The notes beneath the pieces are model-generated. The model saw nothing but the letters and a program-made list of their open reading frames with translations. It was not told where the DNA came from and searched no databases. Below are positions 6,655 through 64,000 of a stretch of 64,000 nucleotides of DNA, piece after piece. The position numbers were made by a program, and so were the translations under genes. The DNA comes from Scyliorhinus canicula (lineage: Eukaryota). The stretch lies in contig NC_052159.1 in NCBI RefSeq assembly GCF_902713615.1, positions 109,545,877 through 109,609,876 on the forward strand, read 5' to 3'. Within the stretch, counting starts at the first letter, position 1, and each line of letters begins with the position of its first letter.

Positions 6655-6981
6655 TAATAACATAAAACATACAATGCAGAAGGAAGCCATTTGGCCCATC
6701 GAGTCTGCACAGATCCATTTAAGCCCTCACTTCCACCCTATCCCCGTAACTCAATAACCCCTCCTAACCTTTTTGGTCACTAAGGGCAATTTATCATGGC
6801 CAATCCACCTAACTTGCACATCTTTGGACTGTGCGAGGAAACCGATGCACCCGGGGGAAACCCATGCAGACACGGAGAGAACGTGCAGACTCCGCACAGA
6901 CAGTGACCCAGCAGGGAATCGAACTTGGGACCCTGGTGCTGTGAAGCCACAGTGCAAACCACTTTTGCTACCATGCTACCC
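6655..6981 (-). mobile_element. HE1/V-SINE
   Basis: tRNA-like head, V-domain TGCACGTTCTCCCCGTGTCTGCGTGGGTTTCC, and CR1 tail. Confidence 0.9.
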
Positions 6982-7289
6982 ATAACATCTTATGTTCTGG
7001 AATGTAAGTTGGGTGGTGGGAGCAGGAATGAGGGCGACTTCTGCCTGTGGATGGGACTGTTGTCCATGGGCTGCACAGCTCATTACATATGCAAATGTGA
7101 GGAGCATGGCGAATTTTGCATTGGGGTGGGCAGGAACTCGCTGTTCCCCCCTCCCCCCTTGCCACCAGGCGTCAAAGGTCCTGGTGCCACGTCTAAAGGG
7201 CAACTGGACAGCCATTCACTCACCGTGAGCCAGGTGGTCCGAAATTTGAATCCCTCATGATTACCCAGAGTAGACTATAGGTGGCCCAA

Positions 7290-9399: not shown

Positions 9400-10110
9400 C
9401 TAATCTGTAGCCTTGCAGGTTATTTCAAGTGCAGATCCAGGTACCTTTTAAATGAGTTGAGTGTTTCTACCTCAAACACCAATTTAAACAGTGTATTCCA
9501 GATACCCACCACCCTCGTGCCCTCTCCACTCCTTTTACCAATCACCTTAAATCAGTGCCACCTGGAAATTAACCCCTCAGCAGGGGAAATAAGTGTTTCC
9601 TGTCTCGGCCCTTCATAATTTTGTACACCTCAATGACGTCACCCCTTAGCCTCCTCTGTTCTAAGGGAAGCAACTCTTGCCTATCCAACATTTCCTCCTA
9701 CCTGCAATTTTCAAGCCCTGGCAGCCTTCTTTTAAATCTCCACTGCACTCTCTCCAGAGCAATTATGTCCCTCCTGTAATGTGGCGACTAGAACTGTACA
9801 CAAAATCCTAACTGTGGCTGAACCAGTGTTTTATCTAGTTCCAGCATTAATTTCCTGCTGTTCTATACATCCCTGCTGTCGTATTCAATGCCTCATTCAA
9901 TAAAGGAAATATTGCATATACTTTCTTTACCACCTTGTCCAATTCTCCTGCCACTTTCAGGGACCTGTGGACACACACACACCAAGGTCTCTCACTTCCT
10001 CAATATCCTCTCGTTTATTGTGTATTCCCCTGCTTTGTTTGCCCTCACAAAATGCATTACCTCTCACTTTTCCAGATTCATTCCATTTGCCACTTTTCTG
10101 CACCTCAACC
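9400..10110 (-). mobile_element. CR1 LINE 3' fragment
   Basis: Similar to the 29305-30100 CR1 end (CCAAAATGCATTACCTC, GAACTGTACACAA..). Confidence 0.7.
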
Positions 10111-10124
10111 AAACCAGGAATATA

Positions 10125-13100
10125 GGGCAGGATTCTCTGATCCTGAGGCTAAGTGTTGCCACAGTCGTAAACACCATCGCGTTTCTCGACGGCGTCAACA
10201 TGCCCTCAGGAGCAGTGATTCTGACCCCTCCAGGGGGCCAGCACGGCACTGGAGTGACCCACGCTGCTCCAGCTGCCGATCCCGGCGTCAGATGGGTGCC
10301 GCGGGCTTTGCGCATGCGCAGTGGGACAGGCGCGACTGCCGTGTGATTCACTATCAATTACGACAAGACGAGTGTAATCAAGGCTTCATTACACAGAGAT
10401 GTGTAGCCTCCCACAGCTGCTGCCGAAATGGCTGCAGCTTGGAGAACCCATACATTTATACTCCGTCTCCTGGGCGGAGCCAGCAGGCAGGTATCTACCC
10501 CCGTACCTGTAGTACAGGAACCTTACCGTAATGCCAATATGTACAATATAATGTAAGTGGTGACTACCACAGTCACCCGCTGTTAAAAAAGAGTCCAGCG
10601 GGGGTGGTGGAAGACTATTTACATGCAGATGTTCAACATTTTAGGAAAAGTTTACAAATTCAGACGATCGGGTGCCTTGCTCCTTTGTTGCGAGCGCCGC
10701 AGTCCTGGTGGCGATGCAGGTGTCGGTTCGGTCGGCGGTGATTCCGGGAGCGTGTCGACCTCATCTTCATCCCTGGGTGGGGCCAACGGGAGGACGGATC
10801 GTCCTGGAGCGGGGGCTTGGTGAGATGTGCTGGGGGGAGGGAGGGTGGCGCCGGGGCGGGAGGGGGTGGACCCAACTGGGGCCAGGTCCCTGAGGGAGAC
10901 TGTGTCTTGGCGGCCGATGGGGTTCGCATGAAGTAGCTGTACCCTCTTGACCAACGGGTCCGCCTTGTGGAGCCGTACGTGCTTGCGGAGGAGAACGGGA
11001 CCCGGAGCTGCCAGCCATGTTGGGAGCGAAACCCCGGAGATGGATTTCCTGGGGAAGGCAAAGAGACGTTCATGGAGGGTTTCGTTAGTCGCAGTGCAAA
11101 GGAGCGACCGAATGGAGTGGAGGGCGTCGGGGAGAACCTCCTGCCAGCGGGAGGCTGGGAGATTCCGGGACCGTAGGGCCAGCTGGACGGCCTTTCAGAC
11201 CGTCTCATTCTCCTGCTCCATCTGCCCGTTTCCCCGGGGGTTGTAGCTGGTCATCCTGCTCGAGGCAATGCCCCTGTTGAGCAGGTACTGGCGCAGCTTA
11301 TCGCTCATAAATAAGGATCCCTGGTCGCTGTGGACATAGGCGGGGAAACCGAACAGAGTGAAGATGGTGTTGAGGGCTTTGATGACTGTGGCAGACGTCA
11401 TATAGGGACATGGGACGACGAAGGGGAATCTGGAGTATTCGTCGACCACATTAAGAAAGTATGTGTTTCGGTCGCTGGAGGGGAGGGGCGCCTTGAAATT
11501 CACGCTGAGGAGTTCAAAGGGGGGGGGGGGGGGAGGCCTTCACCAGGTGCGCTCGGTCTTGCCGGTAGAAGTGCGGTTTACACTCCGCGCAGACCTGGCA
11601 GTCTCTGGTGATAGCCCTGACTTCCTCGATGGAATAGAGCAGATTGCGGGCCTTTACAAAGTGAAACAAACGGGTGACCCCTGGGCGACAGAGATCGACG
11701 TGCAGGGTCCGGAGTTGGTCCACTTGTGCGCTGGCACATGTACCTCGGGATAGGACATCGGGGGGGCTCATTGAGCTTACCGGGGCGATACAAAATCTCA
11801 TAATTGTAGATGGAGAGCTCGATCCTCCACCTCAAGATCTTATCATTTTTGGTCTTGCCCCTTTGTGTATTGTTGGTCAGTTAGGAGAGGGAATCTCCTG
11901 CCGGCCAGGTAATGACTCCAGTGTCGCACAGCTTCTACTATGACTTGGGCCTCATTCTCGATGGAGGAGTGCCGAATTTCGGGGGTATGAAGGGTGCATG
12001 AAAACAATGCCACGGGCCTGCCTCTGATGCATCGCTCTCGACTTGGAAGGGGAGCGTCTCGTCGACCGCTTGCACCGCGGCCTTGGCGATGCCGGCCTCG
12101 ATACGGTTAAAGGCCTGGTGGTCCTCGGCCATCAGTGCGAAAACTGTGGAGTGAATGAGTGGGCGGGCCTTGTCCGGATAGTTAGGGACCCTTTGGGCGT
12201 AGTACGAGAAGAACCCCAGGCATTGTTTGAGGGCCTTGGGGCAGTGGGGAAGGGGGGAGTTCCATGAGGGGGCGCTTGCGATCAGGGTCGGGCCCTAGAA
12301 CTCCATTTAAACCACATAGCCGAGGATGGCTAATTGGTTAGTGCTGAAGACACACTTCTCCTTGTTGTAGGTTAAGTTAAGTAGTTTGGCGGTGTGGAGG
12401 ATTTGGAAGGTTAGCGTCGTGGTCCTGCTGGTCGTGGCCGCAGATGGTGATGTTATCCAGGTACGGGAAGGTGGCCCGCAGTCCGTGCCGGTCAACCATT
12501 GGGTCCATCTCCCGTTGGAAGACCAAGACCCTGTTAGTGACGCCAAATGGGACACTAAGGAAGTGGCAAAGGCGGCCGTCTGCTTCAAACGCGGCGCATG
12601 GGCGGTTCGCCTTGCAAATGGGGAGCTGGTGGTAGGCAGATTTCAGGTCCACTGTCAAGAAGACCCGGTACTGTGCAATCTGATTGACCATATCAGATAT
12701 GCGTGGAAGGGGTACACGTCGAGCTGCGTGTGCCGATTGATGGTCTGACTGTAGTTAATGACCATCCTTTCTGTCTCCCCAATTTTCACAGCTACCACTT
12801 GAGCTCTCCAGCGGCTGTTGCTGGCCTCGATAATGCCTTCCCGTAGCAGCCGCTGGACCTCAGACCTGATGAAGGTCCTGTCCTGGGCACTGACTGTATC
12901 GTCTGCTCCTGGTGGCGACGGGTTTGCAATCCTGGGTGAGGTTCGCAAACAGAGAAGGCGTGTCGATCTTAAGGGTCTTGAGACCGCAGACAATAAGGGG
13001 TGGTAGGGATCCGGCAAATTTCAGGGTTAGGCTCTGGAGGTTGCACTGGAAGTCCAGGCCGAGTAGCAAGGCAGCGCAGAGGTTGGGTAGGCCGTAGAGC

Positions 13101-14973
13101 CGGAAGCCGCTGACCTCTACACCCTGGATGGTGAGGGTGGTGGTGCAGTACCCCGGATCGCCATGGAGTGTGATCCGGAGGCCAGGGAGATTTTCTGGTT
13201 AATGGGGTGTACCGTGAGGGAGCAGCGCCTTACCGTATCGGTGTGGATGAAGCTCTCAGTGCTCCCAGAGTCCAGAAGGCATGATGTCTCTTGCCCATCA
13301 ACCTTTATTGTCGTTGACGCGGTCGCGAGGTTGTGCAGTCGGGACTGGTCGATCGTGATGGAGGCGAGTCGTGGCTGGTGTTGGAAGGCCCCTGGCTGGA
13401 CGGCGGTGGTTGCAGGCAGTGAGTGGCCCGATGAGGTGCCCGACGAGCAGGGGTCCTGGGTCGGGGAAGATGGCGGCACCCACGGGGCGCACGTGGCGGG
13501 TGCCATTGAAGATGGTGAAGTCCACGGGCCGCACGTGCCCTGAGGCAAACAAGATGGCGGCACCCACAGGCCGCACGTGTTGTGAGACGAGCAAGATGAC
13601 GGCGCCCATGGGCCGCACGTGGTCTGAGGCGAGGAAGATGGCTGCGCCCACGGGTCGCATGTGGGAGGTGCAGGGACAATAGCGGCGATCGAGCGGACCT
13701 GTTCGCTGGCGGGGTCCATGATGCCCAGGAGGGGTGGGCCGTGCAGTCGGGGGCGTGCGCCTGTACATTGCGGGAGGCAACTATTAGTGAGATCGCGAGT
13801 TTCTTGGTCGCCGCGAGGTCGAGGGTAGCCCCTTCTAAGAGGCGCTGGGGGATGTAAGCTGACCTTTTGCCTGTAACGAAAGCGTCTCTAATTAGAAGTT
13901 CAGAATGTTCAACGGCCGAAACGGCCTGGCAATCGCAGTCCCTCGCCAGGGCATGCCAGAAATCTTCCACGGACTCACTTGATGCCGCGTGGACAGGAGG
14001 TGCCTGGCGTAGATTTTGTTGGGTCTGCTGAGTGTAGTTCTCCTTCAGTAGCGCCATGGCCTCAGCGTAGGTAGGTGCATCCCGGATGAGGGGAAAGATA
14101 TCAGAGCTCAGCCGCGTGTACAGGATCTGGAGCTTCTGTCCCTCTGAGGGTGGTTCTGTCGCACATCCGATGTAGGCTTCGAAGCAAGCTAGCCAATGTG
14201 CGAAGGCCGACTTGGCGTTATCTGCTTGAGGGGGCAGCTGCAGGCGATCAGGCTTGATGCGGAGATCCATCATTGTAAAATCTCTGCGTAATAAATTAAT
14301 GTACTATCAATTACGACGAGACAAGAGTAGAGTGTAATCGAGGCTTTATTGGGCAGAGATGTGTAGCCTCCCACTGCTGCTGCTGAAATGGCTGCAGCTC
14401 GGAGAGCCCACACATTTATACTCCGCCTACTGGACGGAGCCAACAGGCAAGGATCTACCCCGTACCTGTAGTATAGGAGCCTTACCGTAATACAACAGTA
14501 GTGACTAACACACCACGCATGCGCGGTGGCTCCGTTCTCCACGCCGGCCCTGACACAAGATGGCATAGGGCTACAGGGGCCGGCACGGAACAAAAGAGGC
14601 ACCCAGTCCGAGAGGCCAGCCTGCTGATTGGTAGGCCCCGATCGCGGCCAGGCCACAGCGGAGGCCCCCCCTGGGGTCGGAGATCCCTCCCCCACAAAAA
14701 GGCCTCCCCCAGATGCATCCATGTCAATGTTCCGTGGGGTAAGAGCAGGTGTGGACTGCGCCTGCGGGGCTCAGCTTTTGTGCGTGACCGCTCGGCCCAT
14801 CCTGGGCCGAGAATCGCCGGGGGAGCCCCATAGAGCTGCCCCCGACTAGCCCCGCCGATGCCAATGGCGCCGGTTCTCTGTGCTCCGGAGAATCAGCGGA
14901 CCGGCATCTGGGCAGCGTGGCGCGATTCGCGTCGGTCCCGCCGATTCTCCGGCCTGGTGTGAGAATCCCGCCC
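10125..14973. mobile_element. PIF/Harbinger MITE (TSD ATA) split by a Gypsy insertion
   Basis: ATA-GGGCAGGATTCTC ... GAGAATCCCGCCC-ATA. Confidence 0.8.
10344..14512 (-). mobile_element. Ty3/Gypsy LTR retrotransposon A, full-length but frameshifted (LTRs 10344-10571 and 14297-14512)
   Basis: gag MDLRIKPDRL.. (14273), PR LLDSGS, RT VDLKSAYHQ..PFGV..YLDN, RNase H ESDAS, IN CQVC..FKAPLP..HSDQG..GNGQME. Flanks CCGTG/CCACG. Confidence 0.9.
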
Positions 14974-29304: not shown

Positions 29305-32300
29305 GAACAAAGAACGAAGAACAAAGAAAAGTACAGCACAGGAACAGGCCCTTCTGCCCTCCAAGCCTGTGCCGACCATGCTGCCCGTCTAAACTAAAAT
29401 CTTCGACACTTCCTGGGTCCGTATCCCTCTATTCCCATCCTATTCATGTATTTGTCAAGGTGGCCCTTAAATGTCACTATTGTCCCTGCTTCCATCACCT
29501 CCTCCAGCAGCAAGTTCCAGGCACCCACTACCCTCTGTGTAAATAAACTTGCCTCGTACATCTCCTCTAAACCTTGCCCCTCGCACCTTAAACCTATGGC
29601 CCCTAGTAATTAACCCCTCTACCCTGGGAAAAAGCCTCTGACTATCCACTCTGTCTATGCCCCTCATAATTTTGTAGACCTCCATCAGGTCGCCCCACAA
29701 CCTCCGTCGTTCCAGTGAGAACAAACCGAGTTTATTCAACCGCTCCTCATAGCTAATGCTCTCCATACCAGGCAACATCCTGGTAAATCTCTTCTGCACC
29801 CTCTCTAAGGCTCCACATCCTTCTGGTAGTGTGGTGATCAGAATTGAACACTATACTCCAAATGAGGCCTAACTAAGGTTCCATACAGCTGCAACATGAC
29901 TTGCCAATTCTTATACTCAATGCCTTGGCTAATGAAGGCAAGCATGCCGTATGCCTTCTTGACTACCTTCTCCACCTGTGTTGCCCCTTTCAGTAACCTG
30001 TGGACCTGTACACCTAGATCTCTCTGACTTTCAATACTCTTGAGAGTTCTACCATTCACTGTATATTCCCTACCTGCATTAGACCTTCCAAAATGCATTA
30101 TCTCACATCATGTTCTATAATAGTGTAGAGGGAATTTAGAGGGGTTTCACAGCACGGCGCAACACCGAGGGCTGAAGGGCCTGTACTGCACTGTAATGTT
30201 CTATGTTCTATGTTCTATTTGTCCGGATTAAACTCCATCTGCCATTTCTCTGCCCAAGTCTCCAAACGATCTAAATCCTGCTGTATCCTCTGACAGTCCT
30301 CATCACTATCCGCAATTGCACCGACCTTTGTGGCGTCTTCAAACTTACTAATCAGACCAGTTACATTTTCCTCCAAATCATTTATATATACTGCGAACAG
30401 CAAAGGTCCCAGCACTGATCCCTGCGGAACACCACTAGTCACAGCCCTCCAATTAGAAAAGCACCCTTCCATTGTTACTGTCTGCCTTCTATGACCAGTT
30501 CTGTATCCATCTTGTATGAGGGGCCAGTTCTGTATCCACCTTGCCAGCTCACCCCTGATCCCGTGTGACTTCACCTTTTGTACCAGTCTACCATGAGGGA
30601 CCTTGTCAAAGGCCTTACTGAAGTCCATATAGACAACATCCACTGCCCTACTTGCATCAATCATCTTTATGACCTCGTTGAAAAACTCTATCAAGTTAGT
30701 GAGACACGACCTCCCCTTCACAAAACCATGCTGCTTCTCACTAATACGTCCATTTGCTTCCAAATGGGAGTAGATCCTGTCTCAAAGAATTCTCTGCAGT
30801 AATTTCCCTACCACTGACGTAAGGCTCACCGGCCTGTAGTTCCTTGGATTATCCTTGCTACCCTTCTTAAACAAAGGAACAACATTGGCTATTCTCCAAT
30901 CCTCCGGGACATCACCTGAAGACAGTGAGGATCCAAAGATTACTGTCAAAGCCTCAGCAATTTCTTCTCCAGCCTCCTTCAGTATTCTGGGGTAGATCCC
31001 ATCCGACCCTGGGGACTTATCTACCGTAATATTTTTCAAGACACCCAACACCTCGTCTTTTTGAATCTCAATGTGACCCAGGCTATCTACACACCCTTCT
31101 CCAGACTCAACATCCACCAATTCCTTCTCTTTGGTGAATACTGATGCAAAGTATTCATTTAGTACCTCGCCCATTTCCTCTGGTTCCACACATAGATTCC
31201 CTTGCCTATCCTTCAGTGGGCCAACCCTTTCCCTGACTAGCCTCTTGCATTTTATGTACGTGTAAAAAGCCTTGGGATTTTCCTGAACCCTGTTTGCCAA
31301 TGACTTTTCGTGACCTCTTCCAGCCCTCCTGACTCCTTGCTTAAGTTTGTTCCTACTTTCCTTATATTCCACAAAAGCTTCATCAGTTCCCAGCCGTCTA
31401 GCCCTGACAAATGCTTCCTTTTTCATTTTGGCATGGGCTACAATATCTCTTGTTGTCCAAGGTTCCCGAAATTTGCCGTATTTATCCTTCTTCCGCACAG
31501 GAACATGCCAGTCCTGAATTCCTTCCACTGTTCCCGAAATGCTCCCCTACTGAAACTTCGACCACCTAGCCGGGCTCATTCCCCAATACCAGGTCCAGTA
31601 CAGCCCCTTCCCTATTAGAACAGAGAACATAGAACATAGAACACTACAGCGCAGTACAGGCCCTTCGGCCCTCGATGTTGCGCCGACCTGTGAAACCATC
31701 TGAAGCCTATCTGACCTACACTATTCCATTTTCATCCATATGTCTATCCAGTGACCACTTAAATGCCCTTAAAGTTGGCGAGTCTACTACTGTTGCAGGC
31801 AGGGTGTTCCACACCCCTACTACTCTCTGAGTAAAGAAACTGCCTCTGACATCTGTCCTATATCTCTCACCCCTCAATTTAAAGCTATATTGTTTTAAGA
31901 AGCCCTCCTGGATGCTCCTTACAAACTCTGCCCCGTCCAAGCCCCCAGCACTAAGTGAGTCCCAATCAATATTGGGGAAGTTGAAGTCTCCCATCACAAC
32001 CACACTGTTGGTTTTACTCATTTCCAAAATCTGTCTACCTATCTGCTCCTCTATCTCCCGCTGGCTGTTGGGAGGCCTGTAGTAAACCCCCAACATTGTG
32101 ACTGCTCCCTTCTTATTCCTGATCTCTACCCATGTAGCCTCGCTGCCCTCTGACGTGTCCTCCCGTAGTACAGCTGTGATATTCTCCCTAACAAGTAGCG
32201 CAACTCTGCCACCCCTTTTACATCCCCCTCTATCCCGCCTGAAACATCTAAATCCTGGAACTTTTAGCTGCCAATCCTGTCCTTCCCTCAACTAGGTCTC

Positions 32301-51872: not shown

Positions 51873-52174
51873 CAGCAGCACGGTAGCACAAGTGGATAGC
51901 ACTGTAGCTACACAGTGCCAGGGTCCCAGGTTCGATTCCCCGCTGGGTCACTGTCTGTGCAGAGTCTGCACGTTCTCCCCATGTCTGCGTGGGTTTCCTC
52001 CGGGTGCTTCGGTTTCCTCCCACAGTCCAAAGACATACAGGTTAGGTGGATTGGCCATGCTCAATTGCCCTTAGTGTCCAAAAAGGTTATGGGGATAGGG
52101 TGGAAGTGAGGGCTTAAGTGGGTCGGTGCAGACTTGATGGACCGAATGGCCTCCTTCTGCACTGTATGTTCTAT
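51873..52174 (+). mobile_element. HE1/V-SINE inside an old LTR-like sequence
   Basis: Head, V-domain and tail; TGGTG on both sides. Confidence 0.88.
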
Positions 52175-53059
52175 GGTGAAATCGGCTCCTTTTAAAACAT
52201 ATACATTGGGTTGGGAAAAAGTATTCTGCAAAGGAAGGGATCCATTTTACATGAATCTTATTGTGACCTGTGGAGGGGATTGAATAAAGAAAGAGTTCCA
52301 GCTGATCCCTCCGTACCCGGGGCATAACAATTTGGGGTGTTCCAAGCCGGACGGTAACAAATTGAGGTGTCTCGCCGAGGTTAACTAATTTGGGAATCTC
52401 GCCTGGGGACTATTGTACACTGGTAAATCTAGAAATAGTGCAGATGAGAGAAATCTGGCCACAGCTAGGTTGGCAAAGTCCCCCTGCTCTCAGATCAGTC
52501 TTTATTAATATTCTTGAAGGTGCAAAAAAAATTTGTAAAAAGTGATTAAAGACCATACAGACATTGCCACCTTCCCCAGAAGAATCTACTGATGCACTGG
52601 TACGTTGAACCACAGCGCTGGTGGCAGATCTGTTCAGCTGCCTCTGTACCATCTTGATTTAGCTGGCATAAAAGACATCAAACTTTTCAAAATCTGAACT
52701 TTTTAGATCGGACGCCTGAAAAATCCAACATAAAATTGTGGACAATTTGGTTGTGAACAAGCTGAGTAATTAACAGCTTGTTAACTTTGTTTTTCAAAAC
52801 TGGCTGGCAGGCTGTTAATTTCAGCACGCACCTGATTTCCATAATGATGTTGGGTCGGTGACCCGGCATCATCACACCAGATTTCATGTGAGCACACCTA
52901 ATTGTGTTAGCCGCCTAATTTCTGAATGTAAAATGCACCCTAGAATTACACATCCTGCATCCTGTCCTGATGCCTACTGCCTACTGTGCCTGTGCAGCTT
53001 TAGCAGGCAATCTTTGGTAGGTCAATAGCTCCAAAACCCAGAGGACATCTCATCTGTCA

Positions 53060-53226
53060 AATAATCGCTTATTGTCACAAGTAGGCTTCAATGAAGTTAC
53101 TGCGAAAAGCCCCTAGTCGCCATATTCCGGTGCCTGTTCGGAGAGGCCTGTACGGGAATTAAACCCGCGCTGCTGGCATTGTTCTGCATTGCAAGCCAGT
53201 TATTTAGCCCACTGTGCTAAACCAGC
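53060..53226 (-). mobile_element. Short tRNA-derived SINE (second family)
   Basis: Reverse complement of the 40443-type SINE. Confidence 0.78.
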
Positions 53227-55119
53227 CTCTGAGAAATGAGCAGCCTTCCTGAAGCTCACAGAGAGTACATCACACAGGAGTGAAAGGAAGCATATGAGAA
53301 TGACTTGATAGTTGTACAAGGGATTCACTTGGGTATGAGTTGGAATGTTTAAGGCATTGTGTGTATGTTTATCGAAATGAATCGTGTACTTCATTTGAAT
53401 TCTTCTGGTCTTTACTTTGTTGCATTCCAAATTTCAAGTCGGCAGTAGTCTTCAGGTGAACAGTTTGGATGATGAGATGTAATGATTCAAATTTTGACCG
53501 TGGGAATAATTTGTATTGGGAGTTTTGAGCACCACAGGATTCATGGTCTCACTACTACATGGTCTCAGATTAGCTGTAGCATGCCTGTATGAGGTGACCA
53601 TGGGCTGCTTTAACAGCCAGGTGAGTGGCTTTAGGCATCTGGATGCTACAACTCCTCCTATTCCTCCATGGATATTGAGCACTCTACACCTTCCTCTTTT
53701 GCATCTCCACTCAACTCTACAGCATGATGTTGTGCAATTACCGTTCTCAAGCCCCTTGCATCCTGAAGAACACTCCCGCCCCAGATCTGTCCAGATACCT
53801 AAATTGCACCATCACCTACCCATGACTTGCTCAACAATCATTCTTGCGGAGACTTGTTTGGTACCTTTCTTCAGCATCAGTGTTAGGGCTCCTTACAGTG
53901 TTCAGTGTCATCAGTCAGATCAAAGAGTTCCCCCTGTCTCCAAGGAGCCATTCACTCACATTGTTTGAAGCAGCAAAAACCCTGTGGGAGATGTAACTGT
54001 GAAGGTATCATGGCAGCTTCTGGGATATCCTGCACAGAAATGCATGAAGACTTCTTGAGCTCACACACCAGCTGATTCTAAATGGCAAATACTCCAGGTT
54101 GACTGGAAGGTGTCTGGATGGCCATTCAGGGCTGTGGTAGAAACTACCGATGCTGTCGGTATTGGTGTTGCAGCTCCCGATGCCATGCTCCAGGTGTAGG
54201 AGCTGTTCCCGTGCTGAAATGAAGGCTTACAGCAGCGAAGTTCAGATCAAGGTGGGTAAAGTCCAAGGTAGGTGAATTAACTCCCAAAAAGTTGGAAGTC
54301 ACTTCAGAACAGTGAAATCTGTCTCTTAGAACAAGTGCTGTGAGTCAAATCCATTCACAAAGGCATTGATTTGCCAACTGTGATTAAATGTATTCCTAGG
54401 GGTTTCATCACATGGCTTGCTCCCAAGCTCAGCCATTTGTCAGCCAACACATCCACCCTTGTGACACTCTTCCTTCCTAGGCCAATCAGAAAGCAAAAAG
54501 ACTCATTACCAATTGGATGCTTGACGTCAGTTATAGAGCCTTCTTATCCCTATTTTCACTATTTTAATCTCTGGTAAAGAGAAATGATCAATGAACATTT
54601 TTTAACAATCCATCTTTTTTGTTGGCCTGATGCTTTTCACTCGGATTATGCATGGCGGTTTCCTGGAGATTGATCTTGAATTCCTGTTGCCTGCAGGCCA
54701 ATTCTGGAGGGTTGGCAACCCTCCAAAGGCAGGCCCAGAAATGTGAAATTTACTGTTTGAAGGCTTTTCAAGTCCATCAGTTTCATCAGTCAATTAATGC
54801 TCACTGTGCTCTCACCTTGCTGACCCTTGTAAGTTCCACAGAGCTCAGCAAACCTGTGCACCAGCTGTTAAAAGCAGAATTCTGGGTTAATGACTCAACT
54901 AATTAATTCATTAAATATTTAAGTGACTGACCCAATAACTCCACAGGGTTTCATGCTCAACCTTCAAACGTGCCCCAGTTAAACCTGGTAGTGGGTGGGA
55001 TCATGTCAGGTTCCTGAGCCACCACAGGTGTTGGGGAAATTAGCACCCCACATCCCGAACTATGGGGTCCACACCCCCCCCCCCCCCTTCCCCCCCCTCC
55101 CCCCCCCCCCAACCAAGAA

Positions 55120-55340
55120 GACCACTATCATTACGGTGCCAAAGATGAAGCAGGCAACGTGCCTCAATGTCTACCGCCTGGTGACCTCGACATCTATCAT
55201 TGTGAAGTTTTTTGAGAGTTGATCATGAGACACATCAACTCCATACTTCCAGAATGCCTTGATCTATTGCACTTCACATACCACTTCAACCGGTCCACAG
55301 CAGACGCTATCTCCCTGGCCCTACACTCATCCCTGGAGCT
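55120..55340 (+). mobile_element. Rex1/Babar-type LINE RT fragment; target of the ERV insertion
   Basis: Decayed translation TIITVPK..TCLNVYRLV.TSIIVKFFE / LDLLHFTYHFNRSTADAISLALHSSLE, cut exactly at the LTR start. Confidence 0.75.
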
Positions 55341-56924
55341 TGTTTTTCTAATTTCACCTATATGTTTTAGAATTCCCCTTATACCACAGACCTTAAGGGC
55401 CAATATTCTAAAACGGCGAACAGGGAACTCCCTCCCTGACTCCAGTACAGGCCTCTGTGAGTGCTATTCGGGTCAAACTCTCCTTTCAAGTTATCCCCCG
55501 GTATACTCATACCTTCACTGAAGAATTTTACTTACTTACCCCTTAATCGCATCGATGTCCCGGGTCCTGCGTTCTTAAGGAAGTGAAGTAAGCTAATAAC
55601 CACTTTTTCAGGTTAAATTATTTTATTATTAACATACTCTTTTTTATCTCATTAAATTAAAAACATTATTTACTTTTTGATGTTGTCTGGTTGGTTGGTG
55701 AGGCCTTCAGACTCTCTCTCTCTCTCTTTCACTTTCAAGTCTCCTGGTCATCTCTCCTGGTGCAGTTTTCTCTTTTTCTCCTCTTCTTCCTTCATTGGCT
55801 GCTGGGCCGCTTCTCTCCTGGGCCTTCCCGTTCCTGGGCCGCTGCTCCTGCTGTCCTTCTTCCTTCTTCGGGTGCCGCTGGTGTTCTGCTCCTGGTGTTC
55901 TGTGGCGTGGTTCCTTTTGTGCCTCTCTTCTTGCCTCATGGGGAGAGAGGAGGAGTCTGAAGCCCGCGCTGTTTTCTTTGTTCCAGCTGTTCTGGAAGCC
56001 CGCGCTGGCTGATCTCTGGCTCGAGATCGGGACCTCCGATAAGGATCGGACTTCGGGTCTTAAAGGGGCAGTCCATCACCATTTTCCAACAACACAAAGA
56101 GATTTTTAAAAACTTTTTTCTTTTGCCTTTCTCCTGCTGCAGGTTGTAATAACCATTCTGATAGACTGAAATTGCTGCCCACAGTTTCTGTGCCCTTCAG
56201 CTGCCACCAACCTCTTGTGGGATCTTTCCCTGCACTCTCCCCGATCAGATGTTGGCAGACCTCTATGTTTCAAATGACACATTCTGTATTTTCCAGAACA
56301 CCCCGTCTTGACATTTGAAACATTACTATAATTTGGTTTATTGTCCCCCCCATCCAATTGTACTAACCTACATCCCTGATCATTGTCATTTGTATGCATA
56401 TCACAGACCAGTGTCAATACGAGTCTTGTTTTCCGTTCCAGATTGGAATGTGGTAATTGTGATATCTTGTACCCCCCACTGATCCCCTAGTCTTATTAAT
56501 TTAAAATGTTCAATTGATCCTGCTTGTATTCCTAACTTCCCCATTAATGTCTAACATTGTCGTGAATCATGTAAGTCTGCCAACCCCTGGTTTACATGAG
56601 AGAACATCTTTCTGACAACGTGTATATTTTTCATTTCAGCATTTACAAAACCGCATTGAACCGTCTCTTTTTTTTTCTTCCCAAACAAATTCTCCCTATT
56701 GTTCTATACATAGTAAAATTTTTATCTTATCTTAACACCTTATTCATTACCTAACCAATAGACTGTGTGTTACACTTTACATATTTTCAACTGTTAACAA
56801 TTTAATATCAATATCGAAACATCGCTTCTTGGCTTTTGGAACAATCATTATTACATACTAAACTAACCCTCTATTAAAACATTCACAGTTTAGAAATGCG
56901 GATCAAGTTATTTAACGACACACA
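55341..56924 (-). repeat. 3' LTR of the foamy-like ERV (~1584 bp, TG...CA)
   Basis: 55341-55678 equals 63662-64000 except for a 1-nt indel. The U3 boundary is inferred from the minus-strand PPT GAGAAGGGGGG-TA-TGTGTG at 56937-56919. Minus-strand AATAAA at 55627-55622. Confidence 0.75.
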
Positions 56925-56937
56925 TACCCCCCTTCTC
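56925..56937 (-). promoter_or_regulatory. Polypurine tract of the ERV
   Basis: Minus strand GAGAAGGGGGG-TA followed by TG, downstream of pol. Confidence 0.7.
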
Positions 56938-57369
56938 ATATATATACAACAGTCCCTATCAATTTACATGAAAATAAAAAAAATTTTCTTATCAACGATT
57001 ATAGCTCTTCAATGCAATATTGTTTTGTTGCATTGGTAACAATTTTCCCGCCGTAGTATCAAGCTACTGAAATTCTTAACCTATTATCATTGATCATATT
57101 GGGGTTCCTCGTCAGTCGCTGCTATCTGCTGCCGAGACCTTAATGATTCCACTGCGTAGTACATACCCCATGGAGACCACAGATCATCCATCAACTAATG
57201 TCCAGTTAGAGATGTCTGACCGGGGGTTTCACTGTCCAGTTATAATTTGATATTCTAATTTGTTTCTAACCCGTAAAGTTTTCCTCCGGGTTCTGTCATT
57301 TAATTCCCTCAAATTTGTAGCCAATTATATCATTAGTTTCCCCCCAATCCTGTCGAACAGATTCTTCTC

Positions 57370-57451
57370 TGGAGTGTAGTTCTCTTCCTTCTTGCGAACT
57401 GGTTTGTTATTGGAGTGTAGTTCTCTTCCTTCTTGCGACCTGGTTTGTTAT
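57370..57451. repeat. 41-bp tandem duplication between pol and the 3' LTR
   Basis: TGGAGTGTAGTTCTCTTCCTTCTTGCGA(A/C)CTGGTTTGTTAT twice, one mismatch. Confidence 0.95.
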
Positions 57452-57657
57452 TAATTTTTTCCACCTGAAAAAGCAAATGAACAGATCAAGGGTGGAGAGG
57501 GCCCTATTCTTTAATTCGGATTATCCCAGAAGTGCCCTCTCCAGGACTTCCGGATTCCTTTTGCCATCATTTCTTTTTGAACTGGTTTATATTCCATATC
57601 CTTGATGTAGTCAAGCCTCCTTCTGTCATTGCACCCCTGAGTGAGATTCGAAGAATC

Positions 57658-60600
57658 TCAAACTCCTCTGATGCTCACTGGGTCGTGTGTTTCAAGCGTG
57701 ACACAATTTCTTTTGCTCCAGACACCATGCTTCTCTAATTCAATTGTATGTGTACCCAGAATCTGAACAATCTTGTCTTTACATTTTACAGTCTCGCGAA
57801 TGATTTCCCCCGCAGTCTTAGTTGGTAACTTCACCCAAACTTCGTCTCCTACTTGATAATTCCCAGATTCACTTGGGTCTCCTTGTCCCTGGGGGACAGA
57901 GGTTCCAAGATTGCTATTAAGATCAAATACTATTCTTTCAATGTCTTTATCCCAGCCTTTATTATTCTGATTCTTTATGATCCAATCCTTTACTTTTCTT
58001 ACAGACCTCTCAGCCATTCCATTACTCTCAGGTGCATATTTCACGGCCCAATTGATTGTTATTCCTCTGTCAGCACAAAAGTTAATAACAGTATTGTTTC
58101 TAAAGTGTGGCGCGTTGTCCATTCGGATCGATTCTGGTCTACCTCTGGAGGTCATCATTTCTGCCAATACCCTTTTGGTTGTGGCTCCATTTGCTTTGCT
58201 GGTTGCTCTAAGGTCAATTTCTCCCGTGCAGCTATCAGCTTTGACTAAAAAATACAAATTACCTTTGCTGCTTCTGGGAAAAAGTGGTCCTGCATAATCT
58301 AATGACCATTCCTGCATCGGTTTCTCAGTTTTTATGCTCCCATATGTTTTATTTCCTCTCTGTCCTCCACAGGCCATACATCTCTCACATTTTCTCCTTA
58401 CTGCAGTTAAATGTTGTCTCCAATAGGCTATTTTAAGTCCCAACTTCTTCAACTCCCTTGCGACTACAACATGACCCCCATGTCCCGTGGCTTCATGTAC
58501 TTGCTTAATTATCATTTGATGGTCGGCTGCTGAGTTCCCAAGAGTCCCCAAGATTATTGTCCTAAGTCTGGCTAATTCATCCACTTCCTGATTCCCCTTA
58601 CACAGTTCCCCAATTCCTTTTGTGTGTGCTTTTTGATGAATTGTCTGGATCTCCATATCGGCTAAAATTTTATCTATCTCTTCCCACTGTTCTTTCTGTT
58701 CCAGTAGTTTATTTCTACCGTTCGTCCAACCGTTTAGTTTCCAAAACTCCAAATCTTTCTCCAATCCTTGCTGCACGAAAAAGCTATCGGTTACAACGGT
58801 AACTTCCTGCAGCTTTCGCTGGTGACACTCCTTTAACCCTTGCAATACTCCCTCTACCTCAGCTGTCTGAGCTGATCCAATGATTATTCCCTGTTCCTCC
58901 ACTACTATGTTTCCTGAATTTTTTAAAATGAATGCCCATCTGGCTTGTTCTTCGTCCTTCTTGACTTTACTACCATCAGTATATAATACCCAAGCATTCA
59001 CCAACTCCGTTTTACTAACTGGCTCATCAAGTTTCTGTCCCTTTTGAATGTTATGAACAAACATTAAGTCAGGGTTTAGAAGAATGGTTTCCCATCTTTC
59101 CCATCGAGCTGTATTCGCGCCTTGCTGGCAAATCTGTCTCTTGGTTAGCTCCTTTAACTCCAAAAACTCAGTTGTGACATAAATTTTCTTACCACCCGAC
59201 AAGTTTTCTATCTCTGCTATTCTCTTTGTTATAGCTGCTAGACATTTCTCGATGTTTGAAAACTTTTGTTCAGCTCTCGACCAGTTTCCTGTCAGATGTT
59301 TGATAGGTGTCTGATTGCTAAGATTAGCAAGTACCATACCATATCCATTTTTATATATGTCTAATTTAATGCTTAAATCATCCTCTTCTTGTCTCCCAAC
59401 TAATGACCCCGATATCGCAATTGCTGTCTTTAACTGATCTAACCCTCTCTGGGCCTCGCTGGTCCAAATAAAATCCCCTTTCAAGGTTTGATAAATGGCT
59501 TTAGCATAGAGACTGAAGTCCTTCACTACTGGCCTTAGATATCCCAACATTCCCATTATTTTTTGAACCCCTTTTTTCGAAACCGGCGCAGTAATTTCAG
59601 CTATCTTCTTCCTCATTTCAATACTGGCCTCTCTACCTTCCTTCGATACTGAATAACCCAAATAGTTGACTTCGCTTCTCCCAATTTGACATTTCTTTAG
59701 CCCTATTTTAAAGCCTGCTTCACCAAGTGTCTTAATGATCCTGGCCACTCTTTCCACATGTTTGTCCTGATCGTCATCTCCAATTAATATATCATCGATA
59801 TATACTAAGGCCAAATCATCTTGAATCAGCTCCCTGATTATTGCCTGAAAGTGATTTGGAGAATTAACATATCCCTGTGGAAGTCTACAATATACATAAT
59901 GCTTAGTTCCAACGGTGAATGCTGTTTTTTCCCTGCTGTCTGGGTCTAATGGAACACTCCAGAATCCATTCGCCAAATCTATACTAGTTAAGTAAGTTTT
60001 TCCCGCGACTTGCTCTAAGGTAGCTTGTGGATTTATTAAATATCTCTTGTCCTTCTTTGTGACTTTATTTAAAGCTTTGTAATTTGTTACCATTCTAAAT
60101 GTACCATCTGGTTTTCTTACTACCTGAAGTGGACTATTTGTTGAGGCATATGTGACCCCTTGAATAATCCCCTGCTGCTCCAATTCCTTGATTATTATCT
60201 CCAGCTCGCTCTTAGCTCCTCTAGGCAAAGGATACTGTTTTTGAGGTCTGTGTTGTCCCCCGTGAATTGTGTGTTGAAATTGCTGGCTAAGCAAACCTGT
60301 GTCATTCTTACCTATCGCTAGGTTTGCTCCCATCAGTACTTCTTCCATCTTCTTCCAAGCTTCGTCATTTAAAATACTTTTCTCTTTCTGTTTCCTTATT
60401 TCCTCCATGTTATCAATTGGTTTTAATATCCTTATTTTTCCAGTATCTATTTTTATTAAATCTTTCCCTGCCATCAGATTATCAGTTCCTGATATTGCCA
60501 GTAATTCTCCCAATCTAACTTCTGGTCTAATATCCTTATTCCCTAATGCTCCTTCTACTATGTAATTCTTTCCTGTCGGATTTCCAGCTTCTTCCCTTAT

Positions 60601-62946
60601 CATTGATATCTCAGCCCCTGTGTCCACTATACATCTTTCCCCCTTGTATACTACTACTAATTCTCCTTTGTCTGTTTCTGTTGTTAGATTTTGTATAGCC
60701 TGTTTAAGGGGAGAAGCCGAATCCTGTCCATATATACCGGGGCCTCCTCTGCCTCCTCCTCGGAATCCCCCTCGCGAGCGTCCCGGATACCCTTCTGATG
60801 GTTGATATCTACCTTGCTCAATCCTCCCCTGACCAGCTGCTCTTCTTCTCCTATCCTCAATGAATCTGTCTCTTTCCTCCCGACTGAGGGCTAGGAATTG
60901 TCCCCTTGGTAAATAATCTAGATTTTGTGGTGGAGGTGGCCCTTGTGATCGCAAATTATACCCATGTTGTGGCATTGCTGGTTGTGCTGGATTTTGTTCC
61001 GATTTGTCAGGTATCTGTCGGTTTGGTGGTCTAATCTGAGCATTTTGTGTTGAAACATTATTTTGGGCAGCTGCTCTTTTTTGTTCCCCTTTTGTGTGTT
61101 TATCCTTAAATGCTTTGCCTGCCAAATCAAATTTAACCAGTTCTCTTCCTATTTCTCTTCTAGAGGTCGTTAACAGTATTATTGAGAGGCTTTTTCCTCC
61201 TGGAATCTTGGGTCCTAATTCCCTCAGGAATCTGACTACATCGACCCCCTCTTCCTTATTAACCTCATATATTCGGTCGATATATGGTGTGAGGTGTTCC
61301 CCTGCATATGCTGCCTCTGTCATCTCTTTCATTAAATTAGCTCTCTCATTTCCCAAATCTAACTCACTTATTAAATCTGAGACTTCGCCTGTAACTATTT
61401 CTCCCACTGTATGTAAATCAATTAATTTGGTGGATTCTCCTGATGCCCCCATTTTCTTCGCTAACTGTTTTAACCTCTGTGAATACTCAATTCTACTCTC
61501 CCCATGTTTCTTTGGGCCTGCTGTCTTCATTACGGCTGCTACTATTTTATACGGTACCATGCCTCCCTGTCCTTCCTCTGGACCTGGTGTAAATGACTGA
61601 ACTATTTTCTCACTTCTGGGGCATGGTGTTCTTAAAGGGGCACCTCTATCTGGGTCCCTATATTCGGAGAAATGTATCCGTCGTCGTACCGGTTCTTCCT
61701 CAAAATAGGGGGTACTATGTTGTGCAAACTCTTCCACCGATTCTATATATTCTTCAAACCTTGCACTTGGTACTTGGCTATCTCGTGGAGCATAACTTGC
61801 CCTATCCATTGGAGTAGGAGCAGTTTTTTGGGGTCTTGGACGATTCTGTATCCTTTCCTGTGGTCTTAATGCTGCTATTATCTGGCCTTGTGTTTCTGTG
61901 CTGTTCCTTACCCTACTCATGGCTCTTCCGAAACTGTCATACCCTTTGCTCATTTGCCAAATTTTAGCTTTGGGGGTAACGTTTGGTAATTCTAGTAATT
62001 TCGTAGAATCAATTTGTTGACTTCCTCCTAATATTTCTCCTATTTTAAGTCCCCTAGCTGTAACCTCTCTTTCCCATCCTTCCTGATCTCTATGGTGTAC
62101 CATTTCTGCTTCTGGATTATAAATATAATACGGTACATCCTTATTTACTGGTCGATAAGAGGAAGGTTGTTGTTGTTTCCAGTGATCGCTATAATCCCCT
62201 ATTTCTAATGGTTTAGAATTTTTTCTATTCCCTATTCCTCTCTTTTGTTTGACTATTTCCTCATTCTCGGATGAGGATGATAATTCTTCCTGTCCCATCA
62301 CAGGAGGCGCCATAATCCCAACTATGCCTTGTTCCTCTTCACTTTCTTGTGGTTCAAAGAAATGATCGATAAACGCTTCTTTCTTATGTGTGGCAGATTG
62401 CTGAGGCCAATTTTCTTCCTGAAACAGACTTGGCTCTGGGTATTGAAAATTGTATCCCGTTGGGAAATTTTCACAGGGGTCCGAATTCTCTCGGCTATCT
62501 GATTCTAGGCCTGATTCCTCGTCACTTTCCATTTCTAATGGTTCATTTTTCTGCAGTTGTTTTATATATTTGCCTACCACTTCAGAGTTACTTTTGGGTT
62601 TACTAGGGATCTGTATTATTTCTGTCCTGTTTACTCCGTCAATGATTTTAATCAGTTTGGAACACACTTTGCCCACTTGAGCAGCTGCATGCTTCTGTCT
62701 GTGTCCAAATACGATTAGTGATTCAGCTCGCTTTTCAAATGCAAACTGACAAAGTGCTTTAAGGACCCTGACTGAATCTGTATATTGCAGGGCTTTTGGC
62801 ACTCTAACAAAGAGGGAGATATCTCCGTCTGGATACATATCTCCTGTCCAGGATTTCTTTTGCTCTTTTAATTTCTTCCATTCCCTTTTCATTTCTACAT
62901 TTCTCTTGACCGTATCCCAGGGCATGAGAATTACCCTAATTGCCAT
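57658..62946 (-). CDS. gag-pol: Gag-Pro-Pol polyprotein (1762 aa): Gag ~62946-60690, PR ~60670-60440, RT ~60300-59400, tether, RNase H ~58990-58565, integrase ~58530-57658
   Basis: The ORF track starts at a GTG (62991); the first ATG is at 62946 in Kozak context AAAATGG. Motifs: PR VDTGAE (60616-60624); RT IDLANGFW (~59959-59982), LPQGYVNSP and YIDD (59791-59802); RNase H YTDGS, AQTAE, TDSFFV, GNQEVD; IN H-x4-H...CERC, LDYAGP, MDNAPHF, NGMAER. No internal stop or frameshift. Confidence 0.95.
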   Translation of the reverse strand: MAIRVILMPWDTVKRNVEMKREWKKLKEQKKSWTGDMYPDGDISLFVRVPKALQYTDSVRVLKALCQFAFEKRAESLIVFGHRQKHAAAQVGKVCSKLIKIIDGVNRTEIIQIPSKPKSNSEVVGKYIKQLQKNEPLEMESDEESGLESDSRENSDPCENFPTGYNFQYPEPSLFQEENWPQQSATHKKEAFIDHFFEPQESEEEQGIVGIMAPPVMGQEELSSSSENEEIVKQKRGIGNRKNSKPLEIGDYSDHWKQQQPSSYRPVNKDVPYYIYNPEAEMVHHRDQEGWEREVTARGLKIGEILGGSQQIDSTKLLELPNVTPKAKIWQMSKGYDSFGRAMSRVRNSTETQGQIIAALRPQERIQNRPRPQKTAPTPMDRASYAPRDSQVPSARFEEYIESVEEFAQHSTPYFEEEPVRRRIHFSEYRDPDRGAPLRTPCPRSEKIVQSFTPGPEEGQGGMVPYKIVAAVMKTAGPKKHGESRIEYSQRLKQLAKKMGASGESTKLIDLHTVGEIVTGEVSDLISELDLGNERANLMKEMTEAAYAGEHLTPYIDRIYEVNKEEGVDVVRFLRELGPKIPGGKSLSIILLTTSRREIGRELVKFDLAGKAFKDKHTKGEQKRAAAQNNVSTQNAQIRPPNRQIPDKSEQNPAQPAMPQHGYNLRSQGPPPPQNLDYLPRGQFLALSREERDRFIEDRRRRAAGQGRIEQGRYQPSEGYPGRSRGGFRGGGRGGPGIYGQDSASPLKQAIQNLTTETDKGELVVVYKGERCIVDTGAEISMIREEAGNPTGKNYIVEGALGNKDIRPEVRLGELLAISGTDNLMAGKDLIKIDTGKIRILKPIDNMEEIRKQKEKSILNDEAWKKMEEVLMGANLAIGKNDTGLLSQQFQHTIHGGQHRPQKQYPLPRGAKSELEIIIKELEQQGIIQGVTYASTNSPLQVVRKPDGTFRMVTNYKALNKVTKKDKRYLINPQATLEQVAGKTYLTSIDLANGFWSVPLDPDSREKTAFTVGTKHYVYCRLPQGYVNSPNHFQAIIRELIQDDLALVYIDDILIGDDDQDKHVERVARIIKTLGEAGFKIGLKKCQIGRSEVNYLGYSVSKEGREASIEMRKKIAEITAPVSKKGVQKIMGMLGYLRPVVKDFSLYAKAIYQTLKGDFIWTSEAQRGLDQLKTAIAISGSLVGRQEEDDLSIKLDIYKNGYGMVLANLSNQTPIKHLTGNWSRAEQKFSNIEKCLAAITKRIAEIENLSGGKKIYVTTEFLELKELTKRQICQQGANTARWERWETILLNPDLMFVHNIQKGQKLDEPVSKTELVNAWVLYTDGSKVKKDEEQARWAFILKNSGNIVVEEQGIIIGSAQTAEVEGVLQGLKECHQRKLQEVTVVTDSFFVQQGLEKDLEFWKLNGWTNGRNKLLEQKEQWEEIDKILADMEIQTIHQKAHTKGIGELCKGNQEVDELARLRTIILGTLGNSAADHQMIIKQVHEATGHGGHVVVARELKKLGLKIAYWRQHLTAVRRKCERCMACGGQRGNKTYGSIKTEKPMQEWSLDYAGPLFPRSSKGNLYFLVKADSCTGEIDLRATSKANGATTKRVLAEMMTSRGRPESIRMDNAPHFRNNTVINFCADRGITINWAVKYAPESNGMAERSVRKVKDWIIKNQNNKGWDKDIERIVFDLNSNLGTSVPQGQGDPSESGNYQVGDEVWVKLPTKTAGEIIRETVKCKDKIVQILGTHTIELEKHGVWSKRNCVTLETHDPVSIRGV

Positions 62947-63372
62947 TTTCGGATTTTTAGTTCTGTTCCTGGTTGTCCCTTTCAGGTGCACTCTGAAATT
63001 AAGGATAAGTACCCTTTCTGGGCCCTATCCAAGGCTGACCAAGGCACTATCTTCCTGCTCTAGTTAAGGGTCGATTGATTATTGGTTTCTGAATATAAGC
63101 GTCCCTATTTTCCAGAAAATGTCCGCACAATCCGCCTTACTCTGAGGATGATTTATTCTTTAGCCCCTTTTACCAGTAATGGATGCAAGATTTTAGTGCT
63201 ATCACCAAAATGTCTTGCAGACTTTTTCTCAGGGTCAGTATCTTCTAGTCTACTGATTTTCACACCCAACCTGAGCTTCAGTCCCCTCGATCCACAGAAT
63301 ATCCTTACAAAAGCCAATCACACCTGACTTTCCAAACTAAACTCGGCAGGTAAAGTTTGACTCACACATAGA

Positions 63373-63642
63373 CTAGAAACTTCTAATATTCTAGCCTTTT
63401 TGCCGGTTAGAAACTTCTAATATTCCACCCGTTTCTTGGGAACTAGAAACTTCTAATATTCTAGCCCCTACTCTGCTTAACTAGAAACTTCTAATATTCT
63501 AGCCTCGCTTTACCTAGAAACTTCTAATATTCTAGGCTTTTCTTGGGAACTAGAAACTTCTAATATTCTAGCCCCTACTCTGCTTAACTAGAAACTTCTA
63601 ATATTCTAGCCTCGCTTTACCTAGAAACTTCTAATATTCTAG
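63373..63642. repeat. Leader array: 8 x 22-nt CTAGAAACTTCTAATATTCTAG with 11-16-nt spacers
   Basis: Units start at 63373, 63407 (variant), 63443, 63481, 63514, 63550, 63588 and 63621. Units 3-5 recur as units 6-8 with a 107-bp period. Confidence 0.97.
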
Positions 63643-63661
63643 GCCTCCACGCTGGGCGCCA
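63643..63661 (-). promoter_or_regulatory. Primer-binding site, tRNA-Lys1,2-like
   Basis: Minus strand reads TGGCGCCCAGCGTGGAGGC versus the Lys1,2 PBS TGGCGCCCAACGTGGGGC (one G.U pair, one bulged A). Confidence 0.85.
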
Positions 63662-64000
63662 TGTTTTTCTAATTTCACCTATATGTTTTAGAATTCCCCT
63701 TATACCACAGACCTTAAGGGCCAATATTCTAAAACGGCGAACAGGGAACTCCCTCCCTGACTCCAGTACAGGCCTCTGTGAGTGCTATTCGGGTCAAACT
63801 CTCCTTTCAAGTTATCCCCCGGTATAACTCATACCTTCACTGAAGAATTTTACTTACTTACCCCTTAATCGCATCGATGTCCCGGGTCCTGCGTTCTTAA
63901 GGAAGTGAAGTAAGCTAATAACCACTTTTTCAGGTTAAATTATTTTATTATTAACATACTCTTTTTTATCTCATTAAATTAAAAACATTATTTACTTTTT
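63662..64000 (-). repeat. 5' LTR (U5 and part of R) of the foamy-like ERV, truncated by the window
   Basis: Direct repeat of 55341-55678; ends ...AAAAACA immediately before the PBS on the minus strand. Confidence 0.92.

Follow-up and report, generated by a model that had tools for sequence, protein, structure and literature searches.

A foamy-like endogenous retrovirus in the small-spotted catshark: a low-divergence family member with gag, pro and pol in one reading frame and no apparent env

A stretch of 64,000 nucleotides (nt) from Scyliorhinus canicula, a catshark known as small-spotted (contig NC_052159.1), was analysed; this whole stretch is referred to as the window, and all coordinates given for the element are positions within it. 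From 55341 onwards the window holds, on the minus strand, a foamy-like endogenous retrovirus (ERV) that is cut off by the window end at 64000. Read along its coding strand, the layout would be a long terminal repeat (LTR) of ~0.96 kb, a Lys-like primer-binding site (PBS), a leader with an array of hairpin-forming repeats and a gag-pro-pol reading frame, followed by 1.36 kb of non-coding DNA, a run of Gs with GGGG/TG (the slash marking the LTR border) and the second LTR. We consider it probable that this element is a germline-integrated, low-divergence copy of a catshark family of foamy-like ERVs that is already in print, ERV-Spuma.0-Sca (Song et al. 2023, PMC10699275). Neither a second copy of the element nor any run of N was found within the window.

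The coding capacity of the element resides in a single uninterrupted gag-pro-pol open reading frame (ORF) at 57658..62946 (minus strand, as are all parts described below), comprising 1762 codons from the first ATG and a stop at 57658-57660, or 1777 amino acids (aa) when read from an upstream GTG. Estimated from base composition, the chance of 1762 stop-free codons is ~1e-55. A first-pass annotation of the same DNA had described an intact, env-less foamy-like provirus whose 1762-aa ORF shows no stop or frameshift between gag and pro and whose catalytic motifs are all in place. The provirus is real and well preserved, and the ORF, its domains, the catalytic residues and the absence of env are all borne out by the results given here.

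Within this ORF, Pfam matches were obtained to RVT_1 (6.8e-32), RT_RNaseH_2 (the tether), RNase_H (2.6e-20) and rve. Catalytic residues were checked by aligning the Pol part to the Pol of feline foamy virus (P0082) and to nine fish relatives. The protease (PR; residues ~752-860, 60367..60693) has its active site, DTGA, at residue 775, where it aligns with DTGA or DSGA of the fish relatives and with the PR motif of feline foamy virus. The reverse transcriptase (RT) and its tether or connection (residues ~880-1300, 59047..60309), recognised by RVT_1 and RT_RNaseH_2, by foamy PR-RT structures and by trees, contain the catalytic D990 and YIDD at 1049. In the RNase H (RH; residues ~1318-1460, 58567..58995) the DEDD residues D1324, E1363, D1387 and D1456 are all kept, each in an invariant column. 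Likewise, the integrase (IN; residues ~1470-1700, 57847..58539), identified through rve and a match to the integrase of prototype foamy virus (PFV), retains the HHCC residues H1484, H1489, C1520 and C1523 together with D1550, D1610 and E1646 of the D,D35E motif. The order PR-RT-tether-RNase H-IN is that of a retroviral Pol, with the catalytic residues intact.

Among solved structures, those of foamy viruses are matched best by this Pol. The best match was to foamy virus PR-RT (7kse, 7ksf and 7o24; E 5.6e-81, 276 bits) and spans RT, connection and RNase H, followed by Ty3 (147 bits, E 3e-42), MLV/XMRV (~101 bits) and HIV (~50 bits), while PFV integrase was the best integrase structure (E 5.8e-14). 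A HMMER scan of 1.84 billion proteins recovered feline foamy virus Pol at E 1.2e-79, and the only close relatives in the same scan were two gene models of Scyliorhinus torazame with 87-89% identity, in agreement with the shark host proposed at first pass. A neighbour-joining (NJ) tree was built from RT and connection (41 sequences, of which 21 were Gypsy-like and none orthoretroviral; ~411 columns, 200 bootstraps). It grouped the window element with S. torazame at 100% bootstrap, and a clade of these two, feline foamy virus, the contig L005 (described below) and all teleost foamy-like sequences was separated from the 21 Gypsy-like sequences, again at 100%. A Xenopus class III sequence (P0238) and the sequence L006 fell outside this core foamy clade, and inside it the window element had no firm branching position (about 0.4). 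By these sequence comparisons, the Pol belongs to the clade of foamy viruses and fish foamy-like ERVs, the lineage to which it had been ascribed from its motifs; the RT phylogeny that had been proposed at first pass places the RT with foamy-like sequences and not with Ty3/Gypsy.

Many Gypsy elements likewise consist of a single gag-pol ORF without env, and Ty3 RT was the second-best structure match, so that the element might be read as a Ty3/Gypsy-type LTR retrotransposon (Metaviridae) of non-retroviral derivation. We hold this to be exceedingly improbable, as the foamy PR-RT match is far stronger and reaches through a separate RNase H domain, as the Pfam matches include the tether (RT_RNaseH_2) as well as a true RNase_H, an arrangement of retroviral kind, as the Gypsy-like sequences are set apart at full bootstrap support, and as a Lys-like PBS and a GGGG/TG border are present. 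Membership of the Metaviridae, with clustering of the RT in that family and a single RNase H directly after it, is contradicted by the tree, the Pfam matches and the structure scores alike.

Ahead of the protease, residues ~1-750 (60697..62946) make up a Gag-like part, recognised by its composition, its position and one weak match. It starts with MAIRV and has no Gly2, it contains no Cys-His box (CX2CX4HX4C), as the first-pass annotation had also observed, and it shows a helical block at residues ~440-625, a P/Q-rich tail and one GR-rich box at residues ~715-745. Lack of a Cys-His box, together with a G/R-rich box near the C-terminus, is a trait of Gag in the foamy-like clade, and foamy-type Gag features as seen here have been described (PMC3705263, PMC5210030). 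No homologue of the Gag-like part was found by Pfam, by a sequence search of the PDB or in a large protein database, and a local phmmer search gave marginal matches only. The weak match is a colinear BLASTP alignment of residues 492-695 with the C-terminus of the ORF in the gag position of L003, a marine metagenome contig (pairwise E 9e-4). AlphaFold models of residues 440-640 and 1-135 both had a pLDDT of 53, and their Foldseek matches (calmodulin, designed proteins, kinases) were uninformative.

Foamy-like ERVs in sharks were published in 2017 and the catshark family in 2023, and the element is therefore already known as a kind. The 2023 paper (PMC10699275) lists for ERV-Spuma.0-Sca 293 elements and 39 LTR-paired loci, the latter mostly of 9.1-9.4 kb and 11 of them with zero LTR divergence. 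The novelty attached to the element at first pass does not stand, since the family had been published, copies with zero LTR divergence included. Compared by eye with the printed portion of the ERV-Spuma.0-Sca sequence, the window element is colinear from the LTR end and PBS through leader, gag, pol and post-pol region to the LTR, a comparison that carries no identity figure. When short probes from the window were sought in the same printed portion, the 22-nt motif of the leader was found, as were 2 of 6 pol 12-mers. Furthermore, the two agree in having a hairpin-repeat array in the leader, gag and pol in one frame and young copies, and in their sizes (gag ~750 codons, pol ~1000 codons, element ~9.2-9.3 kb). 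On this colinearity, the window element is assigned to the ERV-Spuma.0-Sca family. Non-homology of the post-pol and U3 regions, where exact probes gave 0 of 18 and 0 of 6 hits, respectively, was considered and dropped, as the portion of the sequence in print proved colinear there and the probe test is too insensitive for non-coding DNA.

The 3' LTR is best placed at 55341..56300 (~960 nt, TG...CA), of which only 55341-55678 is repeated inside the window. The repeat forms the last 339 nt of the 5' LTR (63662..64000), the remainder of which lies beyond the window. The two stretches differ only by a single 1-nt indel within a run of T, in accordance with the near-identity noted before over the 338/339 nt of overlap, and an AATAAA is present at 55627 in the 3' LTR. 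As to where the LTR begins, all foamy viruses and fish foamy-like ERVs are reported to have GGGTG at the border between polypurine tract and 3' LTR (PMC5210030). The window copy has this trait, with GGGG/TG at 56304-56299 and a short G-run polypurine end at 56301-56310, and the motif sits where, judged by the family consensus, the LTR should start. The first-pass annotation had set the border at 56924, after a purine run, which gave an LTR of 1.58 kb (1584 nt) and left ~730 bp between pol and the polypurine tract. No GGGTG motif occurs at that point. By eye, 56924-56301 is colinear with internal, non-LTR sequence of the family consensus, and in the portion of the consensus in print the LTR begins a few bases after a motif homologous to the GGGG/TG of the window. 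From the border motif and the colinearity together, it follows that the LTR would be ~960 nt long, the spacer 1357 nt and the whole element ~9282 nt (~9.28 kb), a length that fits the published loci. The LTR thus probably starts at 56300, and neither the longer LTR nor the shorter spacer is supported. The 2023 paper gives 866-869 nt for the LTR, as against ~960 nt in the window copy; the start of the published LTR seems to coincide with the second unit of a short duplication, which is absent from the window copy.

At its inner end the 5' LTR closes with the terminal CA of the repeat, directly after which, at 63644..63661, lies an 18-nt PBS. This is equal at 16 of 18 positions to the foamy virus Lys PBS printed in PMC4261875, by which the Lys-type PBS claimed at first pass can be kept as Lys-like, and at 15 of 18 positions to the PBS of L005. 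No tRNA genes were found within the window. The 5' leader (62947..63643) holds, directly after the PBS, an array (63372-63647) in which a 22-nt hairpin-forming motif occurs seven times in exact form and once in diverged form; the folding of the array gave a z of -5.95. This array is also found in the printed part of the ERV-Spuma.0-Sca sequence, and it may be a packaging or dimerisation element or a protein-binding element.

Between the pol stop and the LTR (56301..57657, 1357 nt) the element has no env or accessory ORF. The longest ORF on the coding strand after pol has 47 aa, there are 28-33 stops per frame, and a Pfam search with the 10 longest ORF pieces of the stretch gave no match. Likewise, when the downstream ORFs of L001, L003, L005 and L006 were compared with the element by tblastn in search of env remnants, nothing was obtained below E 0.1, and no ORF above 47 aa that could represent the accessory genes tas/bet lies between pol and the LTR. 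The lack of env and of any long ORF after pol, as first described, is upheld by these results. Its explanation as a loss in this element is not, since the post-pol stretch is colinear with, and similar in length to, the corresponding part of the family consensus so far as this is in print; the absence of env therefore appears to be a trait of the family and not a deletion in the window copy. The published annotation of ERV-Spuma.0-Sca includes a third coding sequence (CDS), at 6989-8314, labelled 'env CDS' by its position, and its authors report that they detected no Gag or Env domain (PMC10699275). In the otherwise intact window copy the homologous stretch, with its many stops in every frame, is plainly non-coding. 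A 41-nt tandem repeat with a purine-rich core (57354-57452, 2.4 copies; Tandem Repeats Finder) also lies in the post-pol stretch.

The age of the copy was bounded from the visible LTR overlap. With zero substitutions in 338 nt, a rate of 5e-10 per site per year sets the 95% upper bound at ~9 Myr, and a rate of 2.2e-10 sets it at ~20 Myr, these being two shark substitution rates from the literature (PMC10699275, PMC4422223). An age towards the low end of this range is favoured by the intact 5.3-kb ORF. The copy is low in divergence, as far as the comparable LTR sequence tells, and whether it is active is not told by sequence. Of the description 'very recent' given at first pass, the low divergence stands; in years, the bound is only ~9-20 Myr or less.

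With just 338 nt of LTR open to comparison, slow shark rates that allow zero substitutions over up to ~9-20 Myr, and a multi-copy family that invites mis-assembly, the copy could also be older than it appears or partly a product of assembly, its LTR likeness having come from gene conversion or repeat collapse. We regard this as very unlikely, as an unbroken ORF of 5289 nt would be hard to keep over long neutral decay, as runs of N and a second copy of the element are both absent from the window, and as the layout is colinear with the family throughout.

The junction of gag and pol sets the element apart from the foamy viruses in a trait that defines them. In the window copy the two lie in one frame without a stop, and no in-frame Met occurs between residues 658 and 782; the Pol ORFs of the relatives begin 10-25 residues before DTGA, whereas the window frame runs on from Gag. 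Since the frame is shared and the start of PR has no in-frame ATG nearby, Pol would be made only joined to Gag. Foamy viruses express Pol separately and never as a Gag-Pol fusion (PMC3705263), and this rule of a Pol made alone, from its own start codon and in a different frame, does not hold for the window copy.

The published annotation of ERV-Spuma.0-Sca places gag at 1538-3796 and pol at 3920-6865, in the same frame and 123 nt apart (PMC10699275), and the published gag-to-pol span differs from the window ORF by only 39 nt. This spacing is as expected if a single in-frame stop lay at the Gag/Pro boundary and pol were taken to start at the next ATG; the consensus would thus carry an in-frame gag/pol stop, which the window copy is without. 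An in-frame gag stop is also present in the class III ERVs XtERV-S (PMC8278194) and OVEX1 (PMC2717909), where it has been read as a site of stop-codon readthrough. By analogy, the layout of the family points to readthrough of a stop codon, the arrangement of gamma- and epsilonretroviruses and of XtERV-S, the shared frame being present in the window copy and the stop, missing from that copy, being implied for the family consensus. The stop-free ORF is most likely a one-codon variant of such a readthrough-type layout, and not a designed fusion. The first-pass annotation had taken the ORF to result from a fusion of separate gag and pol frames, which the published annotation speaks against, both already being in one frame there. 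It had also allowed that this copy could be a derived mutant among sister copies with a gag/pol stop, and from the consensus annotation we judge this to be the likelier case.

Under a readthrough-type layout, transcription from the 5' LTR would be followed by translation of Gag and Gag-Pro-Pol and by processing through the protease, after which tRNA-primed reverse transcription and integration would take place. The family would multiply inside germline cells without an extracellular phase, or with an envelope supplied in trans. The window copy, having a sense codon at the boundary, would make only the full Gag-Pro-Pol fusion, a variant whose autonomy is uncertain and which may depend on sister copies.

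The intact 5.3-kb ORF with all its motifs, the near-identical visible LTR ends, the many zero-divergence copies in the family and the lack of env could also be taken together to mean that the single fused Gag-Pro-Pol ORF is the normal, selected design of the family, and the element an autonomous intracellular retrotransposon that is perhaps still active. The contig L005 (P0098) likewise has one ORF, of 1687 aa, with a Gag-sized N-terminus and PR-RT-RH-IN, and no RNA structure of the readthrough type was found at the junction, both of which speak for a fused design. However, the consensus annotation splits gag and pol by an in-frame stop with a spacing that fits a single boundary stop, related class III ERVs use an in-frame stop, and activity is not readable from sequence. 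Moreover, it is general knowledge in retrovirology that producing Gag-Pol alone usually impairs particle assembly. A selected fusion is accordingly an unlikely explanation of the ORF, in our view, if one to be kept in mind.

Several observations weigh against reading the element as a low-divergence member of ERV-Spuma.0-Sca with a readthrough-type layout. For the in-frame stop, a single published consensus annotation is the only source, and artefacts can enter a consensus that is built from decayed copies. Folding of the Gag/Pro junction (60577-60744) revealed no stable RNA structure (z of the minimum free energy -0.18, by a method that does not cover pseudoknots), and Rfam gave no match within 55000-64000. 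Sister copies did not come to light in an exact look-up of the ORF or in scans of metagenomes and viral contigs, and a search with a piece spanning the Gag/PR/RT junction recovered P0059 only. The start of the LTR is deduced, and not seen twice in the window, as no more than 339 nt of the 5' LTR lie inside it. The PBS has 2 mismatches in 18 to the Lys PBS of mammalian foamy viruses, which was the comparison made in place of one with a shark tRNA. The identification of Gag draws on position, composition and a single weak match, and, as the tree holds no orthoretrovirus, the exclusion of orthoretroviruses rests on the bit scores to solved structures.

The element can also be compared with other retroviral systems. 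IAP, MusD and ERV-L are env-less ERV lineages that spread as intracellular retrotransposons, the 'superspreader' concept. Like them, the window element is an LTR element of retroviral origin, env-less, multi-copy and with young copies; unlike them, it belongs to a different retroviral lineage and host, and its mode of spread is inferred. The fish and amphibian foamy-like ERVs (CmiFLERV of the elephant shark, DrFV and AciFLERV; PMC5512871, PMC5210030) share with it the Pol clade, the GGGTG border, a Gag that has a G/R-rich C-terminus and no Cys-His box, and a Lys-type PBS, which in the window element is Lys-like; those known as full genomes differ in having env-like and, in many cases, accessory ORFs. 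The Pol of the fish foamy-like relatives is just 29-37% identical to that of the window element.

The mammalian foamy viruses (feline foamy virus, P0082; PFV, 7o24 and 3l2q) provide the best-matching PR-RT and integrase structures and have the same PR-RT-RH-IN order, a long LTR, a Lys-like PBS and a GR-rich Gag C-terminus without a zinc knuckle, at a Pol identity of ~26%. In contrast to the window copy, they have a separate mRNA for Pol, which never arises as Gag-Pol (PMC3705263), they depend on Env for budding, and they carry tas/bet and an internal promoter, none of which is present in the window copy. XtERV-S (Xenopus, PMC8278194) and OVEX1 (chicken, PMC2717909), both of class III, resemble the window element in their class III affinity and in having gag and pro-pol in one frame and a Gag with a G/Q/R-rich motif and without a zinc finger, and differ from it in the in-frame stop kept for readthrough and in the presence of env.

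Further foamy-like genomes were found among environmental and archive contigs. L005 (from the Logan data for ERR6050772, 10956 nt) is strongly foamy-like, with 344 bits to foamy PR-RT and 208 bits to PFV integrase over its full length. Its ORF at 1014-6077 (1687 aa) consists of an N-terminal part of ~520 aa and PR-RT-RH-IN and is followed by ORFs of 365, 202 and 469 aa, and a Lys-type PBS lies at 893-910 of the contig. Two pairs of ENA marine metagenome contigs, L001/L002 and L003/L004, one of them labelled TARA, appear to be intact large foamy-like genomes, and among the Pol relatives that could be retrieved from outside sharks they are the closest (31-37% identity). Their ORFs in the gag position have at least 944 aa and 1387 aa; for the second of these a weak match to a Macro domain was obtained. 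Unlike the window element, these genomes have gag and pol in different frames, with 3-6 ORFs without a Pfam match downstream of pol.

In the host DNA next to the element, a 37-nt C-rich homopolymer run occupies 55074-55110, ~230 nt from the LTR end. A Rex1 fragment had been proposed in this flank; ten ORF pieces from 52000-55340 gave no Pfam match, and the fragment is not confirmed. Elsewhere in the window, ORF pieces at ~30218-32291 (minus strand) match the Exo_endo_phos endonuclease and RVT_1 and mark a non-LTR retrotransposon, which is enclosed in a block of strongly negative GC skew at 28-40 kb. A GC-rich block at 10000-14300 (GC 0.56-0.59), in which lies an ORF of 322 aa (13305-14273, minus strand) without a Pfam match, possibly represents a CpG island or an exon.

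The element does not amount to a new kind of system, and what it offers to the study of ancient retroviruses lies in annotation and in evolution. As the stretch published as 'env' contains no ORF in an otherwise intact copy, the family appears to lack env. In the contig L005 a single gag-pro-pol ORF is seen in a second genome, one that is more like those of foamy viruses, and such layouts therefore exist. It is possible, and in our estimation quite doubtful, that the shark foamy-like branch is env-less, still multiplying in the germline and makes Pol only within Gag-Pol, the stop-free copy being a working single-ORF form and not a dead variant; if this were true, separate expression of Pol would have arisen later, in the lineage leading to tetrapod foamy viruses. 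The shared gag/pol frame itself means that a basal foamy-like lineage would make its Pol as Gag-Pol, which bears on the time at which the foamy virus strategy of expression arose.

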